The notes beneath the pieces were generated by a model. It did not search any database. It was not told where the DNA came from and saw only the letters and a program-made list of their open reading frames with translations. Shown in pieces: positions 16,992 to 55,429 of a stretch of DNA of 64,000 nt. This DNA comes from Selaginella moellendorffii (taxonomy: Eukaryota; Plantae; Lycopodiophyta). Location of the stretch: assembly GCF_000143415.4 (NCBI RefSeq), contig NW_003314373.1:324719-388718 (forward strand), read 5' to 3'. The position numbers and the translations under genes are program-made. How positions within the stretch are numbered: position 1 is the stretch's first letter; each line of letters begins with the position of its first letter.

Positions 16992-18833
16992 ATGGCTACG
17001 ATTCTTCCAAAATCTTTGAAGCCGGGATACTCGGACGATCGCGCAAGGGAGCAAAACTACTTTGCCAGTCTTCTCAAAGATTGCACAGGCTCAAGAAATC
17101 TCCAGCAAGGCAGGCAAATTCACGCTCGAATTCTAGAGCTTCCATCTCTCGGCTCTGATCTCTACCTTTGCAACCTCCTCGTTCTCATGTATGGAAGGTG
17201 TGGCAGCATTGCAGATGCCCAGGCGGTGTTTGAGTCCATCGCTAATCCCAATGATTTCTCCTGGAACATCTTGTTTGGTGTATATGCCCACAATGGGCGT
17301 TTGCAGCAAGCCAAGAACACCTTCGATAGAATGCCAAATCCAAATGTGGTCTCTTTCAACTCCATGGCCGCGGCATACGCCCAAAACGGCGAGCTAGATC
17401 GAGCCAAAGAGATGTTCGATGCAACGCCTCGAAAGGACACTGCCTCTTGGAATGGAATGATGCATGCCTTCTCTCAGGCTGGACAGGTCGACGCTGCGAG
17501 AGAGATTTTTGACACCATGCCTCACAAAGACGTCGTGTCGTGGTCGTGTGTTATTTCAGCATATGCCCAAACCGGGCATCTTGAAGAAGCCGAGTCCTTG
17601 TTTTTGAGAATGCCAAATCCAAATGTGATAACTTTCAACGCAATGATAGTCGCGTATTCACAAGCTGCATTGTTCGATCGTGCGAAAAGTCTGTTTGATT
17701 CAATGCCGGAGCGGGATTTGGTGACATGGGCAACGTTGCTCTCCACATATGCCCAAAAGAAAGACCTCCAAAACGCGGAGTTCTTGTTCAAAAGCATGCC
17801 GAGACACGACATTCTGTCAATGAACGTGATGATCAATGCTTACGTTCTTAATGGTCAACTTGAGAAGTCCATCTCTACTTTTAAATCTATGCGCTACAAA
17901 GATGTTGTTTCATGGACGTCTGCTCTTTCCGCATATGCCCAAGCAGGTCATGTTGGCGACGCAAAGTTGCTCTTTGACAAGATGCCGGAATGGAACGTTG
18001 TCTCATGCACGACCTTGATCTCACTATTTGCGCTCAAACAAAGGCTAGAAGACGCTACAGTCTTGCTTGACTCAATGCCTGAGCACGACGTCATTGTATG
18101 GAACGCAATTTGTGCAGAATATGCCAACAATGGGCATCTTGAGGAATCCAAGAAGGTGTTTGATTCCATGCCATACAAGAACTTGGAATCCCTCCACGCA
18201 CTGATGGCCGCTTACGTGCACAACATGAAACTTAACGAGGCTAGACAGCTCCTCGATTCCATGCAAGTCCGAGATATAGTTTCCTGGAACACTCTCGTCG
18301 CTGCTTATGCCCAAAACGGTCAAATGGATCGAGCAAGCGGGCTCTTTCGAGGTCTCCCTCAAACCGACGTGGGAACCTGGAGTTCTATGATCGCTGGGCA
18401 TGCAAAGGCTGGCCATGGCGAGAAGGCCGTCCAAGTTTTGAGTGAGATGGTCATGGAAGCCGTAGCACCCGACGAGCTAACTTTCGCGAGCGTTTTAGCA
18501 GCTTGCAGCCATGGAGGGCTGCTCGAGCAAGGCACACGCTACTTCCTTTTGATGAGCTCGGACCTCGGGATCAAGCCGCTGGTGGAGCACTTCTCGGCGA
18601 TGGTGGACATTTACAGCCGAGTCGGGCTGCTCAAGTTTGCCGAGGAGCTGATTGAGACGATGCCGTTTGTGCCGCAGCCGGAGACTTATCGAGCTCTGAT
18701 GAGTGCCTGCGAGACCCAGAAGAATTCGTCGCTGGGGTCTCGAGCTGCCGAAAAGGTTGTTGCTTTGGATCCTGCTAAGTCGACATCGTATATAATGCTT
18801 TCGAATATGTACAGGGACAAACTTACTAGTTAG
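16992..18833 (+). CDS. Pentatricopeptide repeat protein, PLS/E class
   Basis: 613-aa ORF with tandem ~31-aa repeats, VLAACSHGG, YIMLSNMY. Confidence 0.95.
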   Translation: MATILPKSLKPGYSDDRAREQNYFASLLKDCTGSRNLQQGRQIHARILELPSLGSDLYLCNLLVLMYGRCGSIADAQAVFESIANPNDFSWNILFGVYAHNGRLQQAKNTFDRMPNPNVVSFNSMAAAYAQNGELDRAKEMFDATPRKDTASWNGMMHAFSQAGQVDAAREIFDTMPHKDVVSWSCVISAYAQTGHLEEAESLFLRMPNPNVITFNAMIVAYSQAALFDRAKSLFDSMPERDLVTWATLLSTYAQKKDLQNAEFLFKSMPRHDILSMNVMINAYVLNGQLEKSISTFKSMRYKDVVSWTSALSAYAQAGHVGDAKLLFDKMPEWNVVSCTTLISLFALKQRLEDATVLLDSMPEHDVIVWNAICAEYANNGHLEESKKVFDSMPYKNLESLHALMAAYVHNMKLNEARQLLDSMQVRDIVSWNTLVAAYAQNGQMDRASGLFRGLPQTDVGTWSSMIAGHAKAGHGEKAVQVLSEMVMEAVAPDELTFASVLAACSHGGLLEQGTRYFLLMSSDLGIKPLVEHFSAMVDIYSRVGLLKFAEELIETMPFVPQPETYRALMSACETQKNSSLGSRAAEKVVALDPAKSTSYIMLSNMYRDKLTS

Positions 18834-18864
18834 TAGACCTGCGCACTGCAAAGGAAGAAAGAAA

Positions 18865-20215
18865 TTAAGGGGAGAAGAAAAGCTTAATACCTTGCTTACC
18901 AGCAATCTCACGAGCATGGCTTTGCCTTTTCACTGCGTGGTTTTTGAGAATTTCTTTCTTGATGTCGGCCGAGAGCTTGTAGCTCACAAGGCGGATAATG
19001 GGAGCCCAGAAAGCCTCGAGCAGTGTCCTGGCGAAGCTCGCGGGAGCAAGCATCCCGCGAGTGAGCACCACCAGCGGGAAAAACGACTTCGGTGCCACGA
19101 GAAACGAGCCTTTCTTGACAGCATCGAGCGTGACCTCCGCGAGCTTATCGGGTGACTGCATCGTCTTGGGATCATATCGATTGAGTATCTTGAGCATTGT
19201 TTCAAACTCGCCATCCTTGTCCACTGCAAAAAGTGTAGACTGTCACGGCTAGAAATCTTTCAAGTGTAAGTACCTTGATCTATAAGAGCAGTGTCGACAA
19301 AGCCAGGACAGACGAGATTGACATTGATGTTATACGGCAAAAGCTCGAGATGGAGACACTCTGCTAATCCTCGTAGAGCATGCTTGGTTGCACTGTACAC
19401 TGAGCTCCCGTACAAAAGGAACTGGAGAAAAGATCAACACAAGATATAAAGAGAGATTCCTATAGAGTGAAGTATACCAGTCCTGCTCCGGAGCTGACGA
19501 TCACAATCGAGTGCTTCTTTTCGCTTGCGAGCGGCTTCATGAGTGGAAGCGCGGTGTGGACTGTATGAATCACTCCCATCAAGTTCGTCTGGACTTGACC
19601 TGCATGAACTTCCACCGGGACTTCGTCAAAGTATCCAGCCTTAGTGTACCCCGCGTTGCAAACCAGGACGTCGATTGGTTTCCACGAGTGAGCCTCGCTC
19701 ACGGCGGAGGATATCGCGTTAAAATCGCCAACGTCGGCCACCTGATAAAAGTAGGATAACTCCAAGTAAGAACTTGGAAAAATTCCAATCAAGTAAGAAC
19801 GAATAAAGAAAGCAATCCAAAGGACGAACAGAAGAAAACAAGACGAAAGAAACAAGAAACAAAGAGCAAAACAGCAAAACAAAAAGCTATCAGAACGATG
19901 GACGATCAAGGCAGAAAGAGATGTATGTATACATACCAAAACTTTGATGCTATGGCTGTCGCAGTGCGCTTCACTCACAAGAGATTGAGCCGCCTTGTCG
20001 AGCTTGAGCTGGTTTCTGGCCGAGATGGTAACAAATGCCCCTTGGAGGAGGGCCTGCTTGGCAATGGCGAGCCCAATGCCGCTGGAAGCTCCTGTGATAA
20101 AGACGTGCTTGCCCGCCAGCGATGGGATAGCCAGTTTCTTCCTCCTGCCAAATGTAAGAAATGCAAACGCCACCGCCGCTGCCGCTGCCGCTCCCGCCGC
20201 CACTAGCCCCGCCAT
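18865..20215 (-). CDS. Short-chain dehydrogenase, 3-ketodihydrosphingosine reductase (TSC10/KDSR)-like, multi-exon
   Basis: N-terminal TM, HVFITGASSGIG, DVLVCNAG, YSATK catalytic motif (19380-19400), CPGFVDT. Confidence 0.85.
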
Positions 20216-20510
20216 TGCTCCCGCGCTAGGGCTCACATCAATTCGATTTGGGGTTTATCTTTACTTTACTGCTACACTCTTTTGATTTTGATAAAATTGA
20301 TAATTCTTGATCTTTTCGTTAAATAAAAGAATACTAATTGCTATGGAAGTTGGCCCCTATTGTGTCTTGTTCTAGAACCCAGAATTATTGGGTTTGTCTT
20401 TTTTTTACTATAGCATTATTTTTAAAAGTTGTAATAACTAAGCATATCCTATTTTAATGCTATTTAAAAAGCCTTTATAAAGCAGATATAAACCATTTCA
20501 TACTTAAAGA

Positions 20511-20963
20511 ATGACAGAGTTTGTTGTAGTTGTTTTCCTTTATTCATTTTTACTATATTTTCTTTTAGTTGGTGGGTATTTGCCAAGTGAAGCAACTCAA
20601 GATTGTATATCAATTGGTACACAAGATCCACCTTCTCCCCAAGCATATTGTCATGTAACAAATCTGTGTAAAGTTAGGTACTTTAATAATTTTTGGGAAA
20701 ATGGAGAATATACTGCCTCGGGAGGAGGAATTTATGTCACAATTACTGTTAATAGAATGTATAGTAGGGCATCAATTCAACAAGATATAGAACAAGCTTT
20801 TAATTTTATATGGATTAGATGTATATCAGTGCTACGTCAAATGGGTGGTTTTGTTTATTTGAATGATGGAAGTTTATCAGTTAATGTTCAGATTGCACGA
20901 AGAAGAGAGTTATTAAAAGATCTTGATAGAATTAAAATAACAAAAGAATGTTCATCTTTATAA
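20511..20963 (+). CDS. Small secreted protein, putative LDL/Y3-lectin or DUF26-like fold (copy 1)
   Basis: Intact 150-aa ORF in AT-rich DNA with hydrophobic signal peptide; frame conserved in copy 2 and homologous to the N-terminal domain at 58263-58670. Confidence 0.75.
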   Translation: MTEFVVVVFLYSFLLYFLLVGGYLPSEATQDCISIGTQDPPSPQAYCHVTNLCKVRYFNNFWENGEYTASGGGIYVTITVNRMYSRASIQQDIEQAFNFIWIRCISVLRQMGGFVYLNDGSLSVNVQIARRRELLKDLDRIKITKECSSL

Positions 20964-22742
20964 ATACCATTAATATTATAAAAAAATTATTATTTATAAA
21001 TTTAAAATAAAAATTAATAAAAGAATATAATCCAGAGTGTAGTATTTAAAACATATAATATAACAGATATTAAAACTATGATTATGATACATGACTTATG
21101 ACATAAAATGAAACAAACACAATATTAAGTGGTAGTATAGTTTGAAAAACAAAATATTTCCAAAATATTTTTTGAAATAAGATAGTTAGAGATATTATAA
21201 TTAAATTCATTAGTTTCAAAATAATTTACTATAGTTTCCTAGCAGCAATATCTGGTCTTCTTGGGGTTAGTTTCCAAGAAAAATAGTTAGAGAGGAGGAA
21301 TTTAAAAAACTACTCTTAAATCTTATAAGTTTTGATATGATAGTTTGATGATGATTAAACTTATACATATAAGGTAATAATTTGTTGCACATTACATGCT
21401 TTTAAGAATGTCATTGAAGTTATAATTAAAACTTGAAAACACTTTTTTCACATCATCCTCAATTTCCCATATAACCTCGTCCATAGAATAACCATTCCAC
21501 CAAACCAACAACTCCCAAATTGTCTTGCAATTTGTTTCACCAACCTTTAAAAAAAAAATTTGGTTAGATAAACTTTATTAGTATTAATCTTTGGGACCTA
21601 AAATTCACAACATCACTAGAGTACAAACATGTTTTAAACTTGCTTACATAAAATGTTGCATATGCAACAAAATTGTAGATAATACAATATAATATTGTAG
21701 AGACAATTTAGCACTACCCTTTTAGATATTGTTATGCATTTAATAGTTTAAGGAAAATTTTGTCACCAACTTTATATTTCTCATAATTATGATGTGCATT
21801 AGCCAATTTCTTGTTTCATTCTTGAACTTGTCTTATGTTCAACTTTGCCACTTTCATATCCTCAAAAAAATCACAAGTATGAGGCACTTAAACTAAAGAT
21901 AAAATTAAACTCATGAGAGACTTGGGCTTATAGCTATACATGACCATGAATAGAAACACGTAAATATCCAATTGATGAGTGTTATTATGAGCAATCTAAA
22001 GTCAAGGCAAATGATTCTCCCATACTCTTAATATCGAGTCAAGTTTTCCATAAAAGATTTTAGCATATATTCCAATAGCTAGTTTATAATTTTTATTTGT
22101 CCATTTGATTATGGATGTTTGCCACTAATTATACTCAGCTTATCTCTAACTTCTCAAAAATCATTTGCCAAAACTTATCCTCTCCCTTTAACCTATTTGG
22201 AAAGGGGGCAATTATTTAATGTGAGATATTTTAATGGCTATTTAATCCTTATATATCTTCTATACTTCCAAGAATTCACAACAACAATATATCTAAACTT
22301 CATCCCATGATCACATGTGTTACATTTAGTCAAAATGTTATGATGATATATTAAGGGCAGCTTTTAGGGGTCTGAATGTGGTTGTTATACTAAACCATAC
22401 GTTGGTCTTATTCATAAAATTCTTATATAAATTTATAAAAAAATTATTATATGTCAAGAATTAATACTGATAAAATTAAAATTAAAAAAACAAAAAAAAA
22501 GTACAAATACATGTTTAGTTTTCAATATATATCTTTATATATCTTTGTCTCATTCAATATTGGATGTTTTCTATAATTTATTGCTTCTTAACTATGAATT
22601 TATCAAAACTAAATACAAGTTTTAACTGTTTCAATTGTCCATACCATTGTTTTTGTAGAACTTTAAATGCTTTTATTTATAGCATCACTACAACATTTTT
22701 TAATTAATTTAAAATCTCATAATGCTTATATTACCTTCTTCT

Positions 22743-23147
22743 CTACTGAAATACTACATCATCATAACCATCATGTGAATAATCACCATCAAATGCCCAA
22801 TTTTCCCATCCATACCAACCTTTAGTTTTAAAATGACCATTACCAATAAATGATACACCATCAAATGGTACATTATTTATTATTTTAGAGCACTTTTCTG
22901 CTGATAGTGTATCATAATCAAAGTAAGCAAATTCATTACCTTTTCTCCATAAAATAACATTTGCTTTATAAACATTACAATTTGCAAGAGCAAATTTCAT
23001 ATCTGGAGCCCAATTAAAATTATCTTTTCCTTCAATGATTGTTACTGTATAAAGAAGTTATTAATTAAGGATTAAGTTCAAAATATTATACTTACACTGA
23101 TATATATTAAATAAAAATAAAAGATAGAACCAGGTATTAAAACCCAT
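22743..23147 (-). CDS. Small secreted protein, 117 aa, with G.F...G..GW.NWAF.G motif (copy 1); exons 23147-23096 and 23044-22743
   Basis: Exon 1 encodes the signal peptide MGFNTWFYLLFLFNIYQ; a 51-nt GT-AG phase-1 intron joins it in frame to LTIIEGKDNFNWAPDMKFAL...; structure conserved in three copies. Confidence 0.8.
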
Positions 23148-23999
23148 GAATAAAAAATATAGTAATAATATATAACTAGCTTAGTAATTTCAAGATATTT
23201 AATGTAATTTTAGGTATAAATTTATCTTTAAATAATATAAAGCTGACAATAATTACTAATACTTCCAAAAAGAATTATTTTGTTCAATAATTATAAATTT
23301 CGTCTATACTTGACATGTCAAATTTGTATTTTTTGTCACTCTAAAACAATAGTAGGCATACTACATGCCTAAAATTGTGTTAACATTTGTAATATGTTAG
23401 CAAAATACAAATGAATGATGTTTTTTGGTTTGCTTAAGCAACGCTATAGAGGAAGTGGGGTGGTACTGGATATACCTAGAATATTAAACACTTTCTAAAC
23501 ACTTTCTAGTATATTCTAGTATTCTACCATCTTGATATTAGATTAATCTTGTGTTTATAAATTATAAACATGTTTATAATTATAAAATTCTGATCAATTG
23601 GATTAATAAATAGGAATAACACTACTATTAAGCAAACCAAGCATTACTGCATGCAACACATAAAAAATTATTATAATTTATTACAATTCTGAGCTTATGT
23701 ATTTTAAGATGTCTCAATAATTATTATATTATATAATTATAGTTTCGAATGGATTATCTGTGAGAAATAATATGTTACTCTTTTTTAATTTAAATTCCGC
23801 TCTAATATATGTTTACTAATAACTCTCACTCCCAAAATTAAAGTAATACATGATTTCTATACTACAATTCTCATTAGATGGCAAATAAACTTCATAATAA
23901 TCAATGATGCTCACTTTGATGTTTTGTGTAGAGTCATATGGATATACCATAGTATATCCATATCTTCCCAAAGCAAAAACTCCTATCACTTAAGACTAA

Positions 24000-26292
24000 T
24001 CTAGTACTATAAGCCGAACTTTGTGGGCTGCCGGATCTGGCCAATCGGTGCCATCAGATGCAGGGTAAACTGGTAAATATCGGTTTCTTACTGCACATCC
24101 TTTTGAAATATTTTTGTGAGGTTTTGGGCCGGCCAGTGGGCATGCGGCACGGCCCCGGCTGGGGGAGGAGGTGTGAGCGACACCCGTCTGCTTGCCTGGT
24201 AAAGCTCTCTTTTTTTCACCACGGCTCCTCCCAGCCACGGGGTTTCCAGGGGAAGCGGGAGAGGGGGCACTGCTGCCCAGCAGCGACAAGGACAGGGGAT
24301 CACTCAGCGATACTGCATTCCCTTTTCCAATGGAAGGAGCCCAAATCGTCAGAGCAGGATTTTGGCGACGAGCAGCTGCAAAGGCGTGGCCGGAGGCATC
24401 GACAGGGAAGCAGTGGCTAGGGATTTTGCTGGAATGGATGGCGAGCAAGGGCGTGGCAGAGCCTGGGGGTGTGGATGTGAGGCACGGGAATTCCTATTTT
24501 TGATCCAGCAGAGGATTCGCTTTCATCACGTACAAAAGTGTTGACGACCCGAGGAAAGCCATAGATGATCCCAACAAGACAACAGTGGTAAGCTTACCCA
24601 AACATACCATGGTTTTTGCTGACGAGTCTATTCTTCCAGGGAATGCACATAATTGTAAAGTGAGCGGCAGATGGTTGGCTCCAGAGCGCGTGACGAGCAA
24701 GTGCTACATCATTGGAGTGGCTTTCTCCGGTGGTGATCGTGAAGACTGAGGAGAGCTTTCTCCACGGCGCACTCAGCAGCGATGGACTGGTGGATATGGC
24801 TGCCAAACTCGCCGAGGGAGTGAGCAGGATGGACAGACGCTTCATGGTGATGGAGTTTCATTGGCAATCCTCACAACTTCATTACGTCTTGGGGTCCATG
24901 AAGCTGGAAAAGAAGAAGAGTGGAAATTCGCTACTCCATGCATACGATGTTAACAAGAGCTTGGAAGACTTCCAATGCTTGGAGATGATCACAAGAGAGT
25001 TTGGAAGTTTTCAGAAGATCACAAGAGCTTCGAAGTTTTCTTTTTGCTACTGGATGATTTGATCAACCAAGAACTCTCTATTTTTACAGTTCATGCAGAA
25101 AAGTTTTTGATCTTTGGGAAAGATTCCACTCGCTGAAAACGCACTGAAAAAGTCCTCATTATAATGTAACGTGGGAGGAATGATGAGCTGGATCCAACAG
25201 CCAGTGAGGCTCCACGTTCCCGGCATTCATACCGGGGCTAGGGTTTTCTCCTCCTGGGCCTCCACGAAAAGGTTGCATCGAAAAGGTTAGTTTTTATGCC
25301 TGTCCATACCCTTTCTATCTGCCCTAATAATTGATCTCCATTTCCAAAAGAAGCTGTTGAAAATAATGTCGCACCTTCAACATGTATTGAATGCTATTCG
25401 ACACAGACATACACATTCCACATACAATGATAACGTTGAAAACACTAACCAGCACCAGCATACATATAGCTTTTACAACAGTAATATTCAAGAGGCTACA
25501 CAGTATTGACATCAAACAAATCTTAATAATCAAACTGAACAGCAGTCAATTTCCAATTCCTATTTGCCCCCTTCACCTCAGATTCACAGCACACTTGCTA
25601 GGAATTACTTATATATTGATACATCTGTTTTGACAATGAATATAGGTCCCTTATCATATATTTGTAAGTATTGTCATGCCTCACACTTTGCTGATGCGAA
25701 CAAGTCTATTTGTTGCCAGAGTGGACAAGTCTACCTGCCTCCAATACTTCTATTACCACCTTTTCTGTATTCTATGTATAACTCACACAAACACTCTAAT
25801 TTCAAGAGTAATATAAGACAATATAATAGTGCACTTGCTTTCACATCTATGGGAGCTAGCATTGATATTTTTACGGGTCATGGTCCATACTGCTATAGAA
25901 TTCATGGACAAATCTATCACAAAATTATGCCACAACATCCTTCAATACATCAAAATCCAAGTTACAGTCAATTGTACATGCTAGACTCCAATGAGGCTAC
26001 TGATATCAGAAAACAAAACCCTTTTAACATTATTTGTGATTATAATTTACTACTTCAACTAGATAAGATACTCCAACATATTAATCCATATGCACAAGCT
26101 TTTAGAATGATGTATGAATTGGAATGAGAAAATATTTCAAGAACTATTACTTCTGGTAGCAATTTACGTGGAGTATATATGCTCATTAAAAATGAAGGCA
26201 CAGACCATCGTTGATATAATACTCCACAAACTAATGATGTTGCATTAGTTTTCCAAAGTGAAGGTGGTGTGCCACCTTTTGACCGTGAAATA
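24000..26292 (+). mobile_element. Truncated, shorter Helitron copy (5' terminus, cargo, start of Rep ORF)
   Basis: A|TCTAGTACTATAAG start as at 30556; colinear with 34685-37400; Rep N-terminal motifs CKYC, CCQSG, NIRQYNSALAFTS. Confidence 0.8.
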
Positions 26293-26299
26293 TGGAGAA

Positions 26300-26719
26300 T
26301 ATAGAAGAATGAATAGTAAAGTAAGAACAAATAAAGAAAGCAATCCAACGGATGAACAGAAGAAAACAAGATGAAAGAAATAAGAAACAAACAGCAAAAT
26401 AGCAAAACAAAAAGCTATTAGAACGATGGACTATCAAGATAGAAAGAGATATGTATACATGCCAAAACTTTGATGCTATGGCTGTCGCAGTGCGCTTCAC
26501 TCACAAGAGATTGAGCCGCCTTGTCGAGCTTGAGCTGATTCCTGGCTGAGATGGTAACAAATGCCCCTTGGAGGGCCCAATGCTGCTGGAAGCTCCTGTG
26601 ATAAAGATGTGCTTACCCGCCAGCGATGGGATAGCCAGTTTCTTCCTCCTGCCAAATGTAAGAAATGCAAATGCCACCGCCGCTACCGCTGCCGCTCCTG
26701 CTGCCACTAGCCCCGCCAT
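26300..26719 (-). pseudogene. 5' fragment of the TSC10-like gene
   Basis: MAGLVAAG...HIFITGASSSIG followed by a frameshifting deletion; ends inside intron 1. Confidence 0.88.
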
Positions 26720-27018
26720 TGCTACACCAATTCACTCTTTTCGATTTGGGGTCTATCTTTACTTTACTGCTACACTCTTTTGATTTTGATAAAATTGATA
26801 ATTCTTGATCTTTTCGTTAAATAAAAGAATACTGATTGCTATGGAAGTTGGCCCCAAGCATGCTCTATTGTGTCTTGTTCTAGAACCCAGAATTATTGGG
26901 TTTGTCTTTTTTTTACTATAGCATTATTTTTAAAAGTTGTAATAACTAAGCATATCCTATTTTAATGCTATTTCAAAAGCCTTTATAAAGCAGATATAAA
27001 CCATTTCATACTTAGAGA

Positions 27019-27471
27019 ATGACAGAGTTTGTTGTAGTTGTTTTCCTTTGTTCATTTTTACTATATTTTTTTTTAGTTGGTGGGTATTTGCTAAGTGAAG
27101 CAACTCAAGATTGTATATCAATTGGTACACAAGATCCACCTTCTCCCCAAGCATATTGTCATGTAACAAATCTGTGTAAAGCTAGGTACTTTAATAATTT
27201 TTGGGAAAATGGAGAATATACTGCCTCAGGAGGAGGAATACATGTCACAATTACTGTTAATTCTATGTATAGTAGGGCATCAATTCAACAAGATATAGAA
27301 CAAGCTTTTAATTTCATATGGACTAGATGTATAGCAGTGCTACATCAGATGGGTGGTTTTGTTTATTTGAATGATGGAAGTTTATCAGTTAATGTTCAGA
27401 TTGAACGAAGAAGAGAGTTATTAAAAGATTTTGATAAAATTAAAATAACAAAAGAATGTTCATCTTTATAA
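27019..27471 (+). CDS. Small secreted protein, putative LDL/Y3-lectin or DUF26-like fold (copy 2)
   Basis: Intact 150-aa ORF with 12 aa differences from copy 1. Confidence 0.75.
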   Translation: MTEFVVVVFLCSFLLYFFLVGGYLLSEATQDCISIGTQDPPSPQAYCHVTNLCKARYFNNFWENGEYTASGGGIHVTITVNSMYSRASIQQDIEQAFNFIWTRCIAVLHQMGGFVYLNDGSLSVNVQIERRRELLKDFDKIKITKECSSL

Positions 27472-29493
27472 ATACCATTAATACTATGAGAATATATCAT
27501 TAGCTAGAAATTTAAAATAAAAATTAATAAAATCATATAATCCAGAGTGTAGTGTTTAAAATAAATAATAAAACATATATTAAAACTATGATAATGAAAC
27601 ATGACTTATGACATAAAATGAAAAAAATAAATATTAAGTGGTAGTATAGTTTTAAAAAAACATATTTCCAAAATATTTTTTAATATAAGATAGTTAGAGA
27701 TATTATAATTAAATTCATTAGTTTCATTGTGAGAGAAATAATTTACTATACTTTCCTAGCAGCAATATCTGGTCTTCTTTGGGTTAGTTTCCAACAAAAA
27801 AAGTTAGAGAGGAGGAATTTAAAAAACTACCCCTAAATCTCATAAGTTTTGATACGATAGTTTGATGATGATTAAACTTGTACATATAAGATAATAATTT
27901 GTTGCACATTACATGCTTTTGAGAATGTCATTGAAGTCATACCTAAAACTTGAAAACGCTCTTTTTACATCATCCTCAATTTCCCATATAACTTCGTCCA
28001 TAGAATAACCATTCCACCAAACTAACAACTCCCAAATTATCTTGCAATTTGTTTCACCAACCTTTAAACAAGAATATTAGTTAGATCAACTTTATTAACA
28101 TCAATCTTTGGGACCTAAAATTCACATCACTAGAGTATAAATATGTTTCAAACTTCTTTACATAAAATGTTGCATATGCAATAAAATTGAAGATAATACA
28201 ATACAATATTGTGGACCTTTTAGATATTGTTATGCATTTAATAGTTTAAGGAAAATTTTGTCAAACCAACTTTATATTTCTGATAATGATGATGTGCATT
28301 AGCCAATTTCTTGTTTCGTTCTTGAACTTGTCTTATGTTCAACTTTGCCACTTTCATATCCTCAAAAAAATCACCAGTATAAGGCACTCAAACTAAAGCT
28401 AAATTTAAACTCATGAGAGACTTAGGCTTATAGCTATATATGACCATGAATAGAAACATGTAAATATCCAATTGATGAGTGTTATTATGAGCAATCTAGA
28501 GTAAAGGCAAGTGATTCTCCCATACTCTTAATATCAAGTCAAGTTTTTTATAAAAGTCTTTAGCATATATTCCAATAGCTAGTGTATAATTTTTATTTGT
28601 TTATTTGATTATGGATGTTTGCCACTAGTTATACTCAATTTATCTCTAACTTTTCAAAAATCATTTGCCAAAACTTATCCTCTCCCTTTAACCTATCTGG
28701 AAAAGGGGTAATTATTTAATGTGAGAGTTTTTAATGGCTACTTAATCCCTATATATCTTCTAAACTTCCAAAAATCCACAATGACAATATATCTAAATTT
28801 CATCCCATGATCACATGTGCTACATTTAGTCAAAATGTTTGTGATGATATATTAATATCTCACAAATATGGTCCACATGTCAAAGTTCAATAGAAGTGAG
28901 ATATATATGATAATTAATGTTTTTTTCAAATTTTAAAAATTGTAAAATTTTAGTATTTTTTCCAATACAAATCAATCACTGCACTATTGTGGTAAATTCC
29001 AAATGTCTACATTTTAAAAAAACTGGAAAAAACATCAATTGCCTGATGAGTCTAAGAAAGAGAAAAGGATTGATTGATTCAGCCAGACTTAAGAAAAAAC
29101 AAATTGAGGGCAGCTTTTAGGGGTTTGAATGTGGTTGTTATACTAAACAATATGTTGGTAATATTCATAAAATTCTTATATAAATTTATAAACAAAATCA
29201 TTATATGTCAAGAATTAATACTGATAAAATTACAAAAAAAAACCAAAAAAGTACAAATACATGTTTAGTTTTTAATATATATCTTTATATATCTTTGTCT
29301 TATTCAATATTGGATGTTTTCTATAATTTATTGCTTCTTAACTATGAATTTATCAAAATTAAATACAAGTTTTAACTGTTTCAATTGTCCATACCATTGT
29401 TTTTTTAGAACTTTAAATGCTTTTATTTATAACATCACTACAACATTTTTAATTAATATAAAATCTCATATAATACTTATATTATCTTCTTCT

Positions 29494-29898
29494 CTATTGA
29501 AATATTACATCATCATAAACATCATGTGAATAATGACCATCAAATGCCCAATTTTGCCATCCATACCAACCTGTAGTTTTAAAATGACCATTACCAATAA
29601 AAGATACACCATCAAATGGTACATTATTTATTATTTTAGAGCACTTTTCTGCTGATAGTGTATCATAATCAAAGTAAGCAAATTCATTACCTTTTCTCCA
29701 TAAAATAACATTTGCTTGATAAACATTACAATTTGCAAGAGCAAATTTCATATCTGGAGCCCAATTAAAATTATCTTTTCCTTCAATGATTGTTACTGTA
29801 TAAAGAAGTTATTAATTAAGGATTAAGTTCAAAATGTTATACTTACACTGATATATATTAAATAAAACTAAAAGATAGAACCAGGTATTAAAACCCAT
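29494..29898 (-). CDS. Small secreted protein with GW.NWAF motif (copy 2), 2 exons
   Basis: Same ATG, intron and frame as 22743-23147. Confidence 0.8.
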
Positions 29899-30994
29899 GA
29901 ATAAAAAATATAGTAATAATATATAGCTAGCTTAGTAATTTCAAGATATTTAATGTAATTTTAAGTATAAATTTATCTTTAAATAATATAAAGCTGACAA
30001 TAATTACTAATACTTCCAAAAAGAATTATTTTGTTCAATAATTATAAATTTCCTCTATACTTGACACGTCAAATTTATATTTTTTGTCACTCTAAAACAA
30101 TAGTAGGCATACTACATACCTAAAATTGTGTTAACATTTGTAATATGTTAGCAAAATGCAAATGAATGATGTTTTTTGGTTTGCTTAAGCAATGCTAAAG
30201 TGGGGTGGTAGTGGATATACCTAGAATATTCCTGGATATTTTAGGATATTCTACCACTTAAGTGTTATTCATTTAGATTAATCTTGTATTTATAATTTAA
30301 ATAATTGTATTTAGAAATAATATGTTACTCTTTTTTAATTTAAATTCTGCTCTGATATATGTTTACTAATAACTCTCACTCCCAAAATTAAAGTAATACA
30401 TGATTTCTATACTACAATTCTCATTAGATGGCAAATAAACTTAATAATAATCAATGATGCTCACTTTGAGGTTTTGTGTAGAGTCATATGGATATACCAT
30501 AGTCTATCCATATCCTCCCAAAGCAAAAACTATCATACTTATCACTTAAGACTAATCTAGTACTATAAGGAGCAAACGCCAAACTTTGTGGGCTGCCGGA
30601 TCCAGCCAATCGGGGCCGTCCAATGGGGGGGTAACTGTTAAGGGGTTATTTCTTTAACCACGTGTTAGCAAATAATCACGCTGATGTTTGCTCCTGGCCA
30701 ATGGGAGGCAGCCAAGCCATGTGTGGCGGGAGAGGAAGGCCCGACGACGCATGTCACATGCAATATGTTGACTGTTGTTGTCTGTCAAGCGAATTAGTTT
30801 TGTTTTGTATGTTTTTCTAGGGTTTATGAGACAGCGAAAGAGCCCCTGCCGCTGCTGCCAATTCACGATCCAAATCGGAGGCGCTGTGTCAACGCTGGTG
30901 TCTTTGCTCCTGAGAACCATCGCAAGTTGCTATTTGTCATTCTTCTTTCATAACTTTGGTATTCTCATACACGATGTGTCTCTGCTTTTGGCTC

Positions 30995-34684: not shown

Positions 34685-36277
34685 TTAGATGCGGGGTAAA
34701 CCGGTAAATATCGGTTTCTTACCACACGTCCTTTTGAAATATTTTTGCGAGGTTTTGGGCCGGCCAGTGGGCACGTGGCACGGCCCCGGCTGGGGGAGGA
34801 GGGTGTGAGTGACACCCGTTTGCTTGCCTGGTAAAGCTCTCTTTTTTTCACCACAGCTCCTCCCAGCCACGGGGTTTCCAGGGGAAGCGGGAGAGGGGGC
34901 ACTGCTGCCCAGCAGCGACAAGGACAGGGGATCGCTCGGTGATGCTGCATTCCCTTTTCCAGCAGAAGGAGCCCAAATCGCCTGAGTAGGATTTTGGCGA
35001 CGAGCAGCTGCAATGGTGTGGCCGGAGGCATCGACAGGGAAGTAGCGGCCAGGGATTTTGCTGGAATGGATGGCGAGCAAGGGCGTGGCAGAGCCTGGAG
35101 GTGTGGAGGTGAGGCACGGGAATTCCTATTTTTGATCCAGCAGGGGATTCGCTTTGATCCATCACTCACCCACACAATAGACACAACAGTGGTGCGATGG
35201 GACAGGGAGCACAAACTCACACAGTAAGCAAAGCATTATCGCTCTGCTTGATAACACGTGCTTTGTTTTATTCGCTGAACAGGTCCCCGGAAAGCTTGGC
35301 AGCCGCTTTGCTCAATTTTTGGATGAGAGCCGAGCGAGCAAGCCATGTTCAAGACGATGGAGAGCCAATCATGCCCTGCAAGCTTTGACTGCTTACTTCC
35401 GTCTTGCAACCATCTTCGTTCCATACAAGGAAAGGAGAAAAAATGAGAAGAAGCATTCTCTCGGTTGGGGGACTGGGAGGAAAATAATTCACACGACCAA
35501 GTAAGCAGTAATGTGAGATAGATCCCTGTGGCCGAATGGAATTGGAGCTTAGTGTTCCTATTCACAACGAATTGGTGGCCACATATTCCCATGGTAGTTT
35601 CTCTCTTCCTCTTCTTTGTTCGTATTTTTAATAGTTTTGTTTCGTTTCAGGTTTTGGAGTGACTCTTCCAAGCAAGCAAGCAAGTGATGGACTGGTGGAT
35701 ATGGCTGCCAAACTCGCCGAGGGAACGAGCAGGATGGACAGACGCTTCATGGTGATGGAGATTCGTTGGCAATCCTCACGGCTTCGTTACGTCTTGGGGT
35801 CTGTGAGGCTGGAAAAGAAGAAGAGTGGAAATCCGCTACTCCATGCATATGATGTTGACAAGAGCTTGGAAGATTTCCAATGCTTGGAGATGATCACAAG
35901 AGAGTTTGGAAATTTTCAGAAGATCACAAGAGCTTCGAAGTTTTATTTTTGCTACTGGATGATTTTATCAACCAAGAACTCTCTGTTTTTACAGTTTGAG
36001 CAGCAAAGTTTTTGATCTTTGGGAAAGATTCCACTCACTGAAAACACACTGAAAAAGTCCTCATTATAATGTAACGTGGGAAGAATGATGAGCTGGATCC
36101 AACGGCCAGTGAGGCTCCACGTTCCCCCGGGGCTATGGTTTTCTCCTCCTGGGCCGCCACACGACGGGATGATCCTCCATTCGAGCTCGCAGATCTGAGG
36201 TGCCGTGCTGCTGCACGAATTCCCGGGCTGATCAATTGGAGCATGCACCTCGCAGATCCCAATTTGGTGGAGGAAAC

Positions 36278-36335
36278 ATGGCACTCGCAGTGAGGTAGCA
36301 AAAATGTAAGTCTTGCGAGAAGACACTGTATCAGG
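36278..36335 (+). pseudogene. Captured N-terminal fragment of a plant two-LIM-domain protein
   Basis: MALAVR*QKCKSCEKTLYQ versus the typical MAFAGT.QKCKACEKTVY. Confidence 0.55.
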
Positions 36336-36476
36336 TAACACACATCAATCTGCTCCTTTTTGGCATGCATCGAAAAGGTTAGTTTTTATGTCTGTCCATA
36401 CCCCTCAGTAAATATCTTTTGCTTTCTATCTGCCCTAATAATTGATCTCCATTTCCAAAAGAAGCTGTTGAAAACA

Positions 36477-39400
36477 ATGTCGCACCTTCGACATGTACTG
36501 AATGCTATTCGACACAAACATACACATTCCACATACAATAATAACGTTGAAAACACTAACCAGCACCAGCAGACATATAACTTTTACAACAGTAATATTC
36601 AAGAGGCTACACAGTATTGACATCAAACAAATCTTAATAATCAAACTGAACAGCAGTCAATTTCCAATTCCTATTTGCCCCCTTCACCTCAGATTTGCAG
36701 CACACTTGCTAGCAATTACCTATATAATGATACATCTGTTTTGACAATGAATATAGGTCCTTTATCATATATTTGTAAATATTGTCATGCCTCACACTTT
36801 GCCGATGAGAACAAGTCTATTTGTTGCCAGAGTGGACAGGTCTACCTGCCTCCAATACTTCCATTACCACCTTTTCTGTATTTTGTATATAACTCACACA
36901 AACACTTTAATTTCAAGAGTAATATAAGACAATATAATAGTGCACTTGCTTTCGCGTCTATGGGAGCTAGTATTGATACTTTTACAGGTCATGGTCCATA
37001 CTGCTATAGAATTTATGGACAAATCTATCATAAAATTATGCCACAACATCCTTCAATACATCAAAATCCAAGTTACAGTCAATTGTACATGCTAGACTCC
37101 AATGAGGCTACTGATATCAGAAAACAAAACCCTTTTAACATTAACTGTGATTATAATTTACTGCTTCAACTAGATAAGATACTCCAACATATTAATCCAT
37201 ATGCACAAGCTTTTAGAATGATGTATGAATTGGAACGAGAAAATATTTCAAGAACTATTACTTCTGGTAGCAATTTACGTGGAGTATATATGCTCATTAA
37301 AAATGAAGGCACAGACCATCGTTGATATAATACTCCACAAACTAATGATGTTGCAATAGTTTTCCAAAATGAAGATGGTGTGCCACCTTTTGACCGTGAA
37401 ATATGCATTCATCCAAAATCTTCAGAACCACAACATATATTTATTTTAAGTGTTAATTGTGATCCTATGGTTTATCCATTGCTTTTTCCATATGGAGATA
37501 GAGCCTGGCATGACAAGCTTTCTTCTAACAAGCATGTAACACTCCTTCAATATTATGCCTATCGTTTGTCCAAAAGATATTCAACATTATCAACCTCTAC
37601 AGTTACATATGACCAAATTTTACATGCTGGAAAACTCACTCAACAATATATTGTGGATGCCTATGTTAAAAGTGAAAGCAACAATTTACAATACTATAGA
37701 TCTAATCAAAAAAGTATGAGAGTTGATTTTTATATAGATTTGATGGATTATGTTGCTGGCAAAGCTGCTGATGCAAATGCTCGACCAGGAAAAATATTTT
37801 ACCTTCTACTTTTACAGGAAGCCCAAGAGTTATGCAACAAAATTACCAAGATGCTATGGCAATTGTAACAAAATATGCAAAACCTGATATTTTCATAACT
37901 TTCACTTGCAACCCTAAATGGCCTGAGATATTACAGAATCTGCACCCGAAGGACCTGCTAGGGTTTTTAACATGAAGTTAAAATATTTTCTTCATGATAT
38001 TACACAAAATAATATCTTTGGAAGATGTATTGCATTTATATATGTCATTGAATTCCAAAAAAGAGGTTTGCCACATTGTCATTTCCTAAGTATATTAGAC
38101 AATGAAAGTAAAATTAAAGACCTTGTCACTATTAACCAATATGTATCTGCTCAATTATCTGACCCTTTATCAGAGAATAAACTATTTGAAATAATCACAT
38201 CACATATGATACATGGTCCATATGGATTACTAAATCCTCAAAGTCTATGTATGGAAAACAAAAAATGCTCCAAAAACTATCCCAAAAACTTCAATGACAG
38301 GACTATATATTGTGTGCATGGGTACCCAGAATATTTTAGGCTAAACAAGCCACACCTTTCTTAAAAATGATGTTCCAATTGATAATAGATGGATTGTCCC
38401 ATATAATAAATAGTTATGTAAAAAATACAAAGCCCATATAAATGTAGAAATATGTGCATCAATTAAAAGTATTAAGTATCTTTTTCAATATGTTTATAAA
38501 GGATATGATTGTGCAACCATTGAAATCCAAACAGCTACTCAGTCTGAAAACGTATTAAATTGGGATGAAATCACGAATTTTATAAATACCCGATACATTT
38601 CAGTACTAGAAGCTATTTGGAGGATATTTAAATTTAAAATGCATGGACGCTCACACCCTATAATATGTTTACCCGTACATCTTCCTGACTTCCAAAATGT
38701 GTATTTTACAGAAGGCTTGGAGCACAATGCCTTGCAAAGAGCAGCACGTAATGGAACAATGCTAACAAAATAGTTTAAACTCAATATTCATGATCTAAAT
38801 GCAAGACAATATACCTACATTGAAATATCTTTACATTATGTTTTCAATAAATCTACTAATGTATGGCAATGTCGAAAAAAGAAAAAGGTTATTCCTCGAC
38901 TATACTCAATATCTCCTCTAAATACTGAGTTGTACCACTTACGTATTATTCTTCTTCATAAAAGAGGTGTGACATCCTTCGACAATATTAAAATAGTTAA
39001 TAATGTAACTTATCAAAACTTTTAACAATTTGCTATTGCTATGGGTCTTCTTGATGATGATAACAAGTGGTATAACTGTTTACAAAAAGCATACAATTTT
39101 CAAATGCTTACACAATTGTGTCAACTCTTTACTTTCATATATATTTTTTACAATCCACAAGACCCATCATATCTTTGGGATGTTTTTAAGGGTTAGCTCT
39201 CTGAAGATTTTGGTAGAACAAATATTGTATGCCAATATAAACTTGCTTTAATAGACATTAACTCAAGAATGAAAATACATGGTAAAACAAACCAATTATA
39301 CAACTTACCTATCCCAATCCGAAATATCTCTATTCAATCAATACCAAATTGCAACCATTCATGTACCAAAATTTACCATCATATTAGAAACTGGAATGCT

Positions 39401-43687: not shown

Positions 43688-46600
43688 TTAAGAAGGTGTT
43701 ACTTCGAAGTACACAGCGTATTTTTCATCACTGTAGGAAGAGAGTGGAAACATCAGGTAAGTGTCGTTGTCACCATAAGCCTCAAAACTCATGGGATGAT
43801 ACGAGGCTCTTCCCGCGGTCACACCGAAACTGGCTGCCATCTTGTTGAATCTTTCGCACTCAAGAGTGATATCCCTTCCTTGAGCAACCAAGAAGCAACC
43901 TTGGATGCCGCTGGCCTCGAAAGAAATTTCTCCCGGATGACCAGAGAGCGCTGAACGTAGCTTAAACACCGAAGAACTCGAGGGGAAACCCGAGCTCTTG
44001 CCGTTAGTAAGCCTGACACCATCTTCAATCCCAAAATGAGTGACAAACCTCCCCGGCCGATTCAAGAGCTCGAGAGATACCTCCCGATCGAGCAGCAAGC
44101 TTGTAACATCCTTGACTTGAAACTTCTCTATCGTCTTCAGAGATGGTAGTAACTTAAGTCTGAAAGTTGCGAGAGGAGCTTCTTCGGAGCCGTGTTGAGG
44201 CTTGCTGATCATGGACAACGCTCCATCGCTGCTTGCTGCTAGATACTGGAGCTTTCCTTGTTGGAGTTGCGTGAAGCTAAACAGATTACTGTCACGCACC
44301 GGTTTTATCCATCTCGAAGGAGTCGATACGTTGACGGATCCAAGTTTATAATTGCCATCGCTCATCCCAGCCAGGAGGTAAGGACCGTAGTATATCGCGT
44401 AGAGCGATGAGTACTTTGAGCGCTCATCTAGATCATTTTCAAAAGCGAGTGTAAAACTTATATCGAGAGCTTCCATTCGTTACCTTGGATCTTTTCGAGC
44501 CTTAGCATGGCCGAGAAGGTAAAGGATAATTTATCTCCGGTCTTCCATTCTCGTGACACATCGAAGAACGTTCCTGTGAGAATCGAGCTTTAGAGAATCC
44601 AATCCATGCTATATGCCAGGAAACGAAAGAACCCGTACCTGGTGTTAAGTTTTGAAGCTCAAGTCCGTTGAGAAGGCACCTGGAGGATTGAGCCCAGTAA
44701 GGCACCCGAACGGACAACTTTGCTTCGCTAGTTTTTCCAAGCACAAGCTTCTGCAAGTTTCGCTTCAACAAAACTGGCCAGAGGAGAAAATTTTAGCCTC
44801 ACCTGTGTGAAATTGAATGTGACCGTCATCACAGGATCAGTCGAGGTCATATGATAAACCCGTTGATCTACGCTGAGACCAGCGGCAGTCCACAAAACTT
44901 TAGACGACAAATATTGGATCACGTATAGCTGTGGAGTGTCTTGTACTTCATCTGTGAAGTAAATGGAGTCTCCAAGCTTGGAAAAAGACTCGATTGCTAC
45001 AAACATGTGCAAGTTTTGGACATAAGAAGGAGAAGAGAAGAACATACCGGTTCCATAGCAGCACCAGAAAGACGAAAATGGTGTTCCCCAGCCATGATAG
45101 GACGTCGCTTTGGAGCTTCCAGGGGCAAGAGGAAGCATGTAGATCATAACTCCAGGCTCTTTTCCTCGTTGAATTGTGAGAACCCCGTTGATTAACGCTC
45201 TCTCGTAGAAATCAGCGTAATGCATTTGCTTTGTCCAGCGGAAGAGATTTCGTGCCACCTAAAGCAGTCAAACAGCATGTAACGATAAAACTAAAAAAGA
45301 GAAAAGACTTCCTAATAGAAACCTTGAGCATGTTGTAAGTTGTACAAGATTCCTCGTTTTCGGTTCCCAGAGTATCTCCAAGTCTACTCGGATCGGACCT
45401 GAATTATAAACAGGCCCAGATCTCAGATTGAGCTTACTTGATAAATCCTTACCAGAATTCGCCGGCAGACGTCCCCCCTGTAGCATATGTATGGGAGGAG
45501 CTCACGATTTTCATGAAATATTCGCTTAAATCCTGAAAAAAAACTCGCTAACTCTCATGCTTACAACTGGATTAAAAGCTGGACCTTATAAAGCTTATCA
45601 CCCACAACTTCGTACCGCAATTGAGCACCAATCACAATGGGTATGTGAGTGTTGGCATGAAAGCCCGATATGCTATCAGCCTGGAAAAATTACCAGAAAA
45701 AAAAGAAGGCAAGCAAAAATGTAAGAAAGAAAACAGAAGAAAACAGAAGAATTACCCGAACAGCCAACAATCCTAGGAAACATGGTTTATCAAACAAGTG
45801 TGCCAACTTTAAGTGTTTCGCATCTCCCTGAGAATGGTTTTTTCGTCAGGATCAACCAAGCCAAGCTGTGAAGAGCTTACCGTAATTTGATAGACACGAT
45901 ACAAGACATCGTTCATCCCGCCAGTCTCCTCGTTTAGTGATTGCCAGTGTCTCTCGATGCTATACTTCTCAATGACCCTCTCAACGCGGCTCCCAAAGTA
46001 ATCAGTCATGCCTAACAGCATCTCGAATGCAAGACTGTTCGCGGCGTACGTATACTGATCCAAAAGTCCTGCCATAATCTTTCAAGGGAACAAAAAAAAC
46101 ACAGGACTACGTTGGAAGTTCAAGGAAAAAAAAAACAAGAAAGCTCTATACCTTGTGAATCGTGTAGTATGGTGCCCAAACAGACTCCAGAGCTTCGAAA
46201 CGATCAAACAAGCTGGTTGGAAAAGCAGACAAGTATCCAGTTCCAATCTTTGCCTGGCACTCGGCCAAAGCTGCTACAACAGCATTCATGTTTTCGTAGA
46301 TGGTGAGGTTGTGAGTGGAGGCCCAAGTCATTGCACTCGCACTGAGATAATGCCCTGCAAATGGAAACTTAAGATCACCGAGGAAAGAATCGTTTCACAC
46401 ATACCCACGAAATGGCCCCGGAGCTCTGAGGTCGGAAGCTCCCATCCTCCATAGGCCGATCCCGAGGCGTTCAACCCAGCAGTGGTTCTAAAACTATACA
46501 CCAAGTTGTCCACATCGAGCATCAGCAAGTAGTCGAGATTGGTTTGCTGCGCAATTGCCTGCCACGAATCCGGCAAAAGCCTCACGTCGTGCAGTGAAAC

Positions 46601-46846
46601 AGCCTCAAGAAAGGAATTGTTTCGCTGCTGCTGGAGGACTCTCCTCCTGGAGAATTCTAGCGAACCTGTGGCGGTGGTGGTGTTCCAGCTGCTGGCGGTG
46701 GACGTGAGCTCCAGGCCGGAATCGAATGCCGCGAGGAGCTGAGACCGCAAGGTGTGTGAAACCCCAGTGTTGGTGCACATCTTTCCATGGCCAAGCGGGC
46801 AGAGGAGTGGCAGCAGAGTGAGTACCAGGAGCGAGAAAGGGATCAT
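43688..46846 (-). CDS. Secreted GH127 (beta-L-arabinofuranosidase-like) protein with C-terminal AbfB-like region, multi-exon
   Basis: YGGWE...ELRGHFVGHYLSA, WAPYYTIHK, ETGGMND, HANTHIP, ESCTTYNMLK, FWCCYGT; signal peptide; short introns. Confidence 0.92.
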
Positions 46847-47107
46847 CGTTCGCCTTCTAGACTTCCTGGAAAAGAAACAAGAAGATCATGGAAAGATCAA
46901 GCTTAAGAACAAGCAAGGATGTAAATAAAAGATCCTAAAAAGAGAAAAATAAGGAGAGAAACCCCTTGTCTGGTTTCGATGATGCTGCATTATCCTCTAG
47001 CGCAATGATCCTCCATTCCTTGGAATGCAAGGAAAGCTACCATCACAAACCATCTCCACTCTCGATGCAATCATAAACTTTGCTTCTTTAGATAGCTTCT
47101 CAAGAAA

Positions 47108-47770
47108 TTGCATGATCATTCGAGTCCAAGACCTCCTTTTTGCATGGATGATTGCCTCAGGCTTATTGATTCTTGCAATACACTTTCTTTTGCTCGGCAG
47201 ATTCGAGCTCGTCTTGACTGTGCCGGCACTGTGTTTATCTCCAACAAGCTCATTGAGATGTTTGGCAGGTGTGGTGGAGTGCAAGATGCCGAGAGTGTCC
47301 TCTATGCGATGGACAAGAGGGATCCCTTCTCGTGGGATGCAATGCTCCTGGCGTATACGAATAACTCTTGGCTGACCCAGGCAAGGGTTTTCTTTTTTGA
47401 TCTAATGCCGGAACAGAGCCTCATTGCCTGGACTGCAATACTCGTGGCACATACCCACACAGGTCACCACTGGTTTTTGTCGATGCAAGCTGACTTTAAC
47501 GTCAAACCCAACCAGCGGCACTTTTGTTGTATGGTTGATCTTTTGGGACGTGCTAGCTATTTGGTTGATGCAGAGGATTTAATTGCTAATATGCCCTTTG
47601 AGCCGGATATTTTAGAGTGGACGTGTTTTCTTGGAGCTTGCAAGAGTCACAGCCATGTTGCATTTGGAACTAATGCAGTAAAGAATGTGCTCGACCTTTG
47701 TCCTAGGGGTGAAGCTCCTCAAGCGTATCCTTTGCTTGCAAATTTAATTGGTCAAAATCTGGCTTTTTAG
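47108..47770 (+). pseudogene. PPR gene with a large in-frame internal deletion
   Basis: Matches 56011-57780 but lacks 1128 bp between two ACCCA microhomologies. Confidence 0.85.
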
Positions 47771-47820: not shown

Positions 47821-48650
47821 TCAATGAGAACATAACTTATCACTACCTAATGCCCACCAAACATTGTTAGGACGTTTTTCAGAGTATATAACTACATTAC
47901 AATCATTTTGAATAGTAAAAAATAAAGTGCAACAAAGGAATTTACAAAATTGATTAATTTCCCATACTGTTTTCTCTATTAGATTTAAAATAAGATTACC
48001 ATTGTTTTGAAATTTCAACATACAATTATAACCATATTGTGTAGTACTTGATTCCCAAATTTTATTTCTTTCAAAGTACAAAACAAGGTTGCAATGTGAT
48101 TCAAGAATAAAAACAACTTTACCATTTGGAGAAATTAAAAAGTGATCTGTATAAAGTGTTGAAGGATTACTTATAGAATTGACTTCTAAATAACAATTAG
48201 AATTATAATAATATTTTCTTTCTAATAGAGATATATTTTCTTTTTTAGATATATGTAAATCTGTAATTTGAACCATAATCTCAAGACTTCCATCATATAA
48301 TATAACATAGCCAACTTTGTTTTCCTTTTTATAAAACAGTTACTGAAAATAAATTTTAGAGCTTGCTCAAAATCATGTTGTATTTCTTCAAAGCTTACAA
48401 TTTTTAAGCTTAATGTAAATGTAAAATTTATGTTATTTCAGGAAAATTTATATATTTTATTTTCTATATTATTTCTTAACAGTATATAGCTAATGTTTAA
48501 GAAGTTAGAGTAGTCTTGAGGTGAAGGCATATTATGATGAGTAGAATTAATAACACATTCTTGAATAGATCTATTAGATACATATGCTTGACATTCATAA
48601 AAGCTTAGAATAATAATAAATAATATCAATATTGCCATTTTTATCTCCAT
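47821..48650 (-). pseudogene. Secreted LDL-like domain + bulb-type (GNA) lectin fusion, disrupted copy
   Basis: Signal peptide; TGA stop at 48438 and a 1-bp deletion near 48320; lectin motifs ESHCNLVLY, QNNGNLILN, QNDCNVVIY. Confidence 0.8.
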
Positions 48651-55158: not shown

Positions 55159-55429
55159 GAATAATAAATATAGTAACAATATATAACTAGCTTAGTAATC
55201 TCAATATAATTAATGTAATGTTAAGTACAATTCTATCTTTAAATACTATAAATCTGACAATAATTACTAATACTTCCAAAAAGAATTATTTTGCTCAATA
55301 ATTATAGATTTCCTCTATACTTGACACGTCAATTTTGTAGTTTGTCACTCTAAAACAAGAGTAGGCATACTGCATATCTAAAATTGTTACATTTGTAATA
55401 AGTTAGCAAAATACAAATGAATGATATAA

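Follow-up and report, generated by a model that had tools for sequence, protein, structure and literature searches.

Genomic context of ORF A and its paralogs

The window analysed here, i.e. the whole 64-kb stretch of DNA in which all positions are given, contains an open reading frame (ORF A) at a place where there is no called gene. A search of the window in all six frames, by tblastn plus a profile search, found four copies of its family, designated A, B, C and D. The features considered below are the following:

20511-20963 (+): ORF A, ATG to TAA, single exon, 150 aa, 31% GC, no called gene there
20589-20900 (+): predicted mature domain of A, from the AF2 model plus the fold matches
27019-27471 (+): ORF B, intact, 150 aa, 92% amino acid identity to A, tandem-segment duplicate
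19791-23485 = 26319-30230: duplicated segment of ~3.7 kb, 91-96% nucleotide identity
58263-58670 (-): ORF C, distant paralog, 135 aa, 35% identity to A, 23.5% GC, with a TAA that cuts off the lectin part
57846-58262 (-): lectin part downstream of C, bulb-type (GNA-like), PF01453 B_lectin at E 2.6e-5, below Pfam's cut-off
47821-48638 (-): copy D unit (domain plus lectin), ~96% nucleotide identity to the C unit, pseudogene
~48241-48638 (-): domain part of D, ~89% amino acid identity to C, with an in-frame TGA plus a 1-bp deletion

ORF A is intact along its 150 codons, and its residues are identical to those quoted from the letters in the sequence-only reading that preceded this analysis. It is found within an AT-rich island of ~3.7 kb (19-34% GC) that begins 275 bp upstream of the neighbouring short-chain dehydrogenase gene, which is divergently oriented and has ~50-60% GC; the GC content of ORF A itself is slightly above that of its flanks. 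No terminal inverted repeats bounding the island were found, so that there is no sign of a mobile cassette. An exact-sequence look-up showed that the protein is absent from the record of called genes. When the 3.76-kb AT-rich island was simulated 2000 times with a first-order Markov model, an ATG ORF of at least 150 aa appeared in 0.05% of the cases, which gives a chance of p ~0.0005 per island for an ORF as long as A in DNA at 31% GC.

The predicted protein consists of a signal-like N-terminus (residues ~1-26), a domain with the DUF26/KP4 fold (~27-130) and a charged 20-residue tail with one more Cys. The N-terminus forms a hydrophobic helix (residues 2-21, pLDDT ~89 in the single-sequence AF2 model) followed by the small-residue site S-E-A|T, consistent with a candidate signal peptide and with secretion of the product. 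The sequence-only reading had described a small secreted protein, which is supported as small and, given the 150-aa ORF with this signal-like N-terminus, probably secreted. The tail (20895-20960, +) is unique to A and B; it starts with R-R-R-E-L, which looks like an RxxL-type processing site, and includes a fifth, unpaired cysteine. That this tail might serve in proteolytic maturation or in the formation of disulfide-linked dimers would be pure speculation.

The segment 19791-23485 spans ORF A, a small ORF at 22743-23000 (-) and a portion of the dehydrogenase gene's exon 1. At the B locus there is a duplicated fragment of the same exon 1 (26501-26719, -), with the same N-terminal peptide and then truncated, indicating that the duplication that separated A and B took along part of the host gene with the AT-rich island. 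Copies C and D share a segment of 1.2 kb that is ~96% identical at the nucleotide level. A and C are related by 35% identity (tblastn E ~1e-13), and 46 columns are invariant across A, B and C, among them C32, PSPQ.Y, the E-Q-A-x-N-F-I helix, C104 and G.V.L.DGSL..VQI. The conservation of 46 columns at 35% identity indicates that the protein has been under long-term constraint. We conclude that ORF A is a real, unannotated protein-coding gene of this family, with a present activity that is putative.

Fusion to a bulb-type lectin

The lectin part of C is in the same frame as C, with no intron between, and the two are parted only by the TAA. In D there is a GAA where C ends in TAA, and the domain and the lectin share one intronless frame. 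The N-domain of D contains an in-frame TGA and a 1-bp deletion, which make it a pseudogene. The C and D units are thus broken differently, and together they reconstruct an intronless fusion layout. The lectin parts of C and D match PF01453 at E 2.6e-5 and 5.5e-5, respectively, both below Pfam's cut-off. C and D show that the domain and a bulb-type lectin once formed a single in-frame fusion. No B_lectin domain (PF01453) or remnant of it was found downstream of A or B. Compared with the GNA/bulb-type lectin chimerolectins (PF01453), C and D are similar in carrying a B_lectin-like domain straight after the domain, whereas A and B differ in being without lectin domain or remnant. In its older layout the family combined the domain, in one frame, with a bulb-type mannose lectin, and A and B would be single-domain derivatives in which the short charged tail took the place of the linker and the lectin. 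To our knowledge, the combination of a DUF26-like domain with a B-lectin after it has not been described.

Expression and selection

In three RNA-seq runs there were zero reads over 20240-23300, and the neighbouring dehydrogenase gene was covered in the same runs at a depth of 6-57 with its introns cleanly spliced. No words of ORF A were found in ~18 additional runs of the species. A 405-nt contig over 20713-21117, probably DNA, was present in one small run of unknown type. It is possible that expression of A is confined to certain conditions, or else that A is a young relic.

According to the latter explanation, A and B would be recently duplicated and silenced copies, the frames of which are open only for want of time. 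The lack of RNA in the runs examined speaks for it, as does the A versus B comparison, in which dN/dS is ~0.8 (13.5 non-synonymous and 4.5 synonymous changes) and the substitution identity of the ORF (96.0%) equals that of the upstream flank. Since 6.2% of the possible substitutions create stops, a frame would survive 18 neutral changes without any stop 31% of the time. The sister copies, C truncated and D broken, and the AT-rich, repeat-rich DNA beside transposon remains point in the same direction. However, the two ORFs are separated by 0 indels when ~2.8 would be expected at the rate of the flanks (13 indel events in ~2.1 kb), all 46 columns in common with paralog C are untouched in both A and B, and the ORF is slightly richer in GC than its surroundings. 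Besides, the RNA libraries examined in depth are few. Taking all this together, we consider silenced relics possible, but less likely than a real gene of the family that may still be active.

Cysteine pattern and sequence searches

The C-X8-C-X2-C motif characteristic of DUF26 is absent from A, B and C and from any DUF26-like frame of the window, in which no canonical DUF26 was found either. The six cysteines (three disulfides) of DUF26 are not found in A, B or C. Only two cysteines are invariant in the three proteins: C32, which the AF2 model places in strand 1, and C104, which it places at the C-terminal end of helix 2; A and B have three further, non-conserved cysteines. The expectation from the letters alone, namely that the DUF26 motif is missing and that the cysteines of strand 1 and of the end of helix 2 are kept, was thus confirmed by the A/B/C alignment and by the model.

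By comparison with the 108-residue sequence of Gnk2 (ginkbilobin-2), C32 and C104 would be the first and fifth DUF26 cysteines; the Gnk2 chain listed by Foldseek likewise has 108 residues. On the same alignment the four missing DUF26 cysteines have presumably been replaced as whole pairs, as the sequence-only reading had supposed, and the three mannose-binding residues of Gnk2 are apparently not kept in A. The domain would be held by at most one conserved disulfide, C32-C104, versus three in DUF26.

The Pfam scan gave no family for A at E<=10, and none for B or C at E<=1; in particular, A had no match to PF01657 even at E<=10, nor any to PF09044. The NCBIfam scan of the family gave no match. 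When all PDB sequences were searched with phmmer and with the family profile at E<=10, no LDL, Y3, Gnk2 or KP4 chain was retrieved and there were chance matches only (E >=0.8). The likeness of the C-terminal sequence to LDL, noted in the sequence-only reading, could therefore not be reproduced, and the profile matches to DUF26 or to fungal lectin/KP4 families that it had proposed as a check did not appear in the Pfam scan or in these PDB searches.

An exhaustive phmmer search against 1.84 billion representative proteins found no genuine homolog. Its lone match (E 1.8e-4) was spurious, a low-complexity repeat protein. Word-index searches with A, with the A/B/C profile and with a 172-aa stretch of D that comprises the tail and the lectin (taken so that longer fusions could be reached) retrieved no relative, and the ESM Atlas searched by language-model features gave no usable match. 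B, being 92% identical to A, would surface in such searches were either of them annotated, indicating that the family is missing from public protein sets.

Predicted structure

The single-sequence AF2 model of A was too poor for use (pLDDT 41), and it still shows a C-terminal strand-strand-helix-strand-strand pattern. A second set of models was obtained from an alignment in which A, B and C were combined with the three readable pieces of D, amounting to ~three effective sequences. The best of these five models reached pLDDT 79 and pTM 0.77; the remaining four had pLDDT 45-57. In the best model the order of elements is beta-alpha-beta-beta-alpha-beta-beta with a disordered tail; in the numbering of mature A there is a strand at 2-7, a helix at 17-33, strands at 39-45 and 48-54, a second helix at 60-81 and strands at 86-91 and 96-102. 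This is the same topology as the "beta-(alpha-beta2)2 sandwich of KP4 and ginkbilobin-2" described in PMC10462633.

Foldseek against the PDB returned at ranks 1-15 only DUF26 domains of PDLP5/PDLP8, Gnk2, Zt-KP4, Y3 and LDL. The best E-value was that of PDLP5 (2.4e-4), followed by Gnk2 (1.5e-3), Zt-KP4 (3e-3), Y3 (0.05) and LDL (0.055). The LDL match had a TM by target of 0.60 and the Zt-KP4 match an rmsd of ~7 Å. The probability was 0.85-1.0 for these top families and dropped to <=0.1 directly below them.

VIA-align, which is independent of Foldseek and was run against 48,161 representative chains, gave similar results. In this method scores less than 1 Z unit apart count as a tie. The best matches were Y3 (Z 9.2, rmsd 4.1 Å over 97 residues), PDLP8 (Z 9.0, 2.4 Å over 94), LDL (Z 8.6, 2.6 Å over 87 of 94 residues), PDLP5 (Z 8.5) and Gnk2 (Z 8.4, 2.9 Å over 95). 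Zt-KP4 was a weaker match (Z 6.4-6.7), with unrelated chains at Z <=6.0. The six top matches among the 48,161 chains belong to one superfamily. Sequence identity of A to the structural matches of both programs is 6-16%. In the ESM Atlas searched by shape, the nearest models were all plant PF01657 clusters (TM 0.60-0.62), and a search of a viral structure library gave no match.

From the model, the domain of ORF A is predicted to share the sandwich fold of DUF26/Gnk2, LDL, Y3 and KP4. The two-helix/five-strand sandwich anticipated from the sequence is borne out by the AF2 model, by Foldseek ranks 1-15 and by the VIA-align scores of Z 8.4-9.2, and in the comparison with Gnk2, LDL, Y3 and KP4 suggested at the same time all four were recovered among the top matches by both programs, KP4 more weakly than the others.

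Relationship to DUF26, fungal lectins and KP4

The DUF26 domains (PF01657; Gnk2, 3A2E/4XRE; PDLP5/PDLP8, 6GRE/6GRF) have the same predicted sandwich and a similar size (Z 8.4-9.0, rmsd 2.4-3.0 Å over 94-95 residues); they provide the best Foldseek match of A and are the sole family among its ESM Atlas neighbours. They are plant-encoded and secreted and exist in a single-domain form, as in the sdCRRSPs, and A is likewise plant-encoded and single-domain, with predicted secretion. Like A in its model, they also have one cysteine in strand 1 and another where helix 2 ends. A differs from them in having no C-X8-C-X2-C motif, two conserved cysteines versus six and no PF01657 match, and also in being very AT-rich and unannotated. 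Furthermore, the relatives of A are fused to a bulb-type lectin and not to a second DUF26 or to a kinase.

The fungal lectins LDL (Lyophyllum decastes, 4NDS) and Y3 (Coprinus comatus, 5V6I) have the same predicted fold as A and are, like it, small single-domain proteins with few disulfides, secreted (in A by prediction). However, their sequence similarity to A is undetectable (7-16% identity in the structural alignments), A is encoded by a plant and not by a fungus, and their Foldseek E-values (~0.05) are weaker than those of DUF26. The KP4 killer toxins and KP4-like effectors (Zt-KP4, 8ACX; PF09044) have in common with A a small secreted product (in A by prediction) and, according to the model, the overall sandwich topology, but the match is weaker (Z 6.4-6.7; Foldseek rmsd ~7 Å), there is no PF09044 match and KP4 is disulfide-rich. 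KP4-type genes occur in non-seed plants.

The sequence-only reading had placed the protein as an intermediate between plant DUF26 and the fungal lectins, closer to the fungal type. This placement is not supported, because the structural scores of DUF26, LDL and Y3 are a tie (within 1 Z unit in VIA-align), the Foldseek E-values and the ESM Atlas neighbours favour, if anything, plant DUF26, and there is a sequence link to neither side. Nor is there support for a bearing of the family on the origin of DUF26 of the kind that had been expected, since canonical six-cysteine single-DUF26 proteins are already present in the liverwort Marchantia, the moss Physcomitrella and Selaginella (PMC6368629). 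The six-cysteine form must then predate the lycophytes, and the cysteine-poor form is more simply read as a fast-evolving offshoot. A derived offshoot is at least as likely as an ancestral link for such a cysteine-poor, lineage-restricted form. The family could be an offshoot from DUF26 or, less probably, a transferred fungal-type gene, and either would be simpler than a surviving link.

Under the transfer explanation, the domain would be a fungal-type LDL/Y3/KP4 gene, horizontally acquired and expanded in the lycophyte, and no DUF26 derivative at all. Y3 and LDL are among the best structural matches, the low cysteine count resembles that of the fungal lectins, with their one disulfide in common with DUF26 (PMC6368629), the family genes are intronless, and their composition (24-31% GC) is far from that of the host genes at ~50%. 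There is also a precedent in the known transfer of KP4 genes from fungi into mosses (cited in PMC12513842 and PMC10462633). On the other hand, no fungal or other sequence homolog appeared at any threshold searched, the composition matches that of the surrounding plant intergenic DNA, the ESM Atlas neighbours are plant DUF26 only and Foldseek puts DUF26 first. The viral structure library was also without a match. We find a transfer unlikely on this balance.

The origin of DUF26 has been left as either common origin or convergence with the fungal lectins (PMC6368629), and the present evidence does not settle it. It is improbable, in our opinion, that the family represents an ancient sister lineage of DUF26, poor in cysteines, which has retained only the disulfide shared by the whole superfamily and links DUF26 with LDL/Y3. 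If true, such a lineage would help to decide whether a fungal-type lectin gave rise to DUF26, and a DUF26-like domain with a bulb-type lectin behind it would be a domain combination not described before.

AlphaFold might have drifted on a shallow alignment to a known small alpha/beta sandwich, the true fold being a different or a new one. The low confidence of four of the five models, the identity of only 6-16% to all structural matches and the fact that Z 8-9 is within the range that VIA-align warns of for common arrangements would fit with such an artefact. We nevertheless think it quite improbable, given that the six best of 48,161 chains belong to one superfamily, covering the whole domain with an rmsd of 2.4-3.0 Å, and that the Foldseek probability falls so sharply (0.85-1.0 to <=0.1) right below those families. 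Furthermore, the order of the elements and the sites of both conserved cysteines suit the fold, and the family had been predicted from the sequence before any model was built. Finally, that ORF A is a chance ORF in intergenic DNA, as its being unannotated, AT-rich and without RNA might suggest, can practically be discarded given p ~0.0005 within the island, the confident fold model and a 35%-identical paralog that holds the same frame and motifs, the conservation of which effectively refutes this explanation.

Putative function

The explanation that we prefer, with moderate confidence, is that ORF A is a real gene of a lineage-restricted family with the sandwich fold, formerly fused to a lectin and with an extracellular role in defence. 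As part of the same reading, and with the same reservation, the family appears as a set of AT-rich and intronless genes in the lycophyte genome, which resembles that of a Selaginella in its introns of 50-57 nt and its many PPR genes. The product would be a small protein with a signal-peptide-like N-terminus and a single beta-(alpha-beta2)2 sandwich domain. It would act outside the cell on microbes or grazers, by binding to a glycan or to some other molecule on their surface, and its role would be that of a defence lectin or a toxin-like protein.

This proposal is made by analogy with every characterised member of the fold and from the lectin fusion in the sister copies. Gnk2, LDL and Y3 are glycan binders, toxic to fungi or animal cells (PMC6368629, PMC12637454). 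Mannose is the ligand of the antifungal Gnk2 and alpha-galactosyl glycans are those of LDL, whereas Y3 is a cytotoxic glycan binder and KP4 hinders calcium uptake (PMC6368629, PMC12637454, PMC12513842). A secreted defence lectin or toxin-like protein is the most likely product. The ORF, its paralogs, the fusion, the predicted fold and the lack of RNA in the sampled libraries are results of the analysis; secretion, the disulfide, ligand binding and the role in defence are all inferred.

DUF26 is among the largest extracellular domain families of land plants. If the model is correct, this family shows that a plant protein can have the fold with no more than one conserved disulfide pair, and it adds sequences for testing the link between DUF26 and the fungal lectins. 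A whole family of probable secreted lectin-like genes is absent from the annotation because they are AT-rich, intronless and silent in standard RNA-seq.

Neighbouring genes and repeats

The dehydrogenase gene next to ORF A (adh_short, 18700-20239, -) is expressed and has introns of 50-57 nt plus one of 195 nt. About ten of its positions read as two alleles (~20-70%) in each of the three RNA runs, which would fit two haplotypes or another accession.

A second family of small AT-rich ORFs is found in the window at 22743-23000 (-), 29494-29751 (-) and 54756-55010 (-). They code for 85 aa with 84-93% identity and have a C-terminal GW.GW.NWAF motif and no Pfam match. They travel in ~1.1-kb blocks beside the A-type and C-type genes. 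The comparison of copies 1 and 2 gave a dN/dS of ~0.7, and no RNA reads were seen over copy 1.

Transposon-like repeats are located between the gene copies (24056-26294 = 34687-37405), and the repeated ORF at 25564-26127 had no Pfam match. An ORF at 59170-59736 (+) matches a retrotransposon gag (PF03732, E 1.5e-10). Two long PPR genes, at 16992-18833 (+) and 56011-57645 (+), flank the islands of small genes. The region 46514-47457 is equivalent to 55429-56360, and 46.5-48.7k is a copy of 55.4-58.7k minus ~1.1 kb of the body of the PPR gene.
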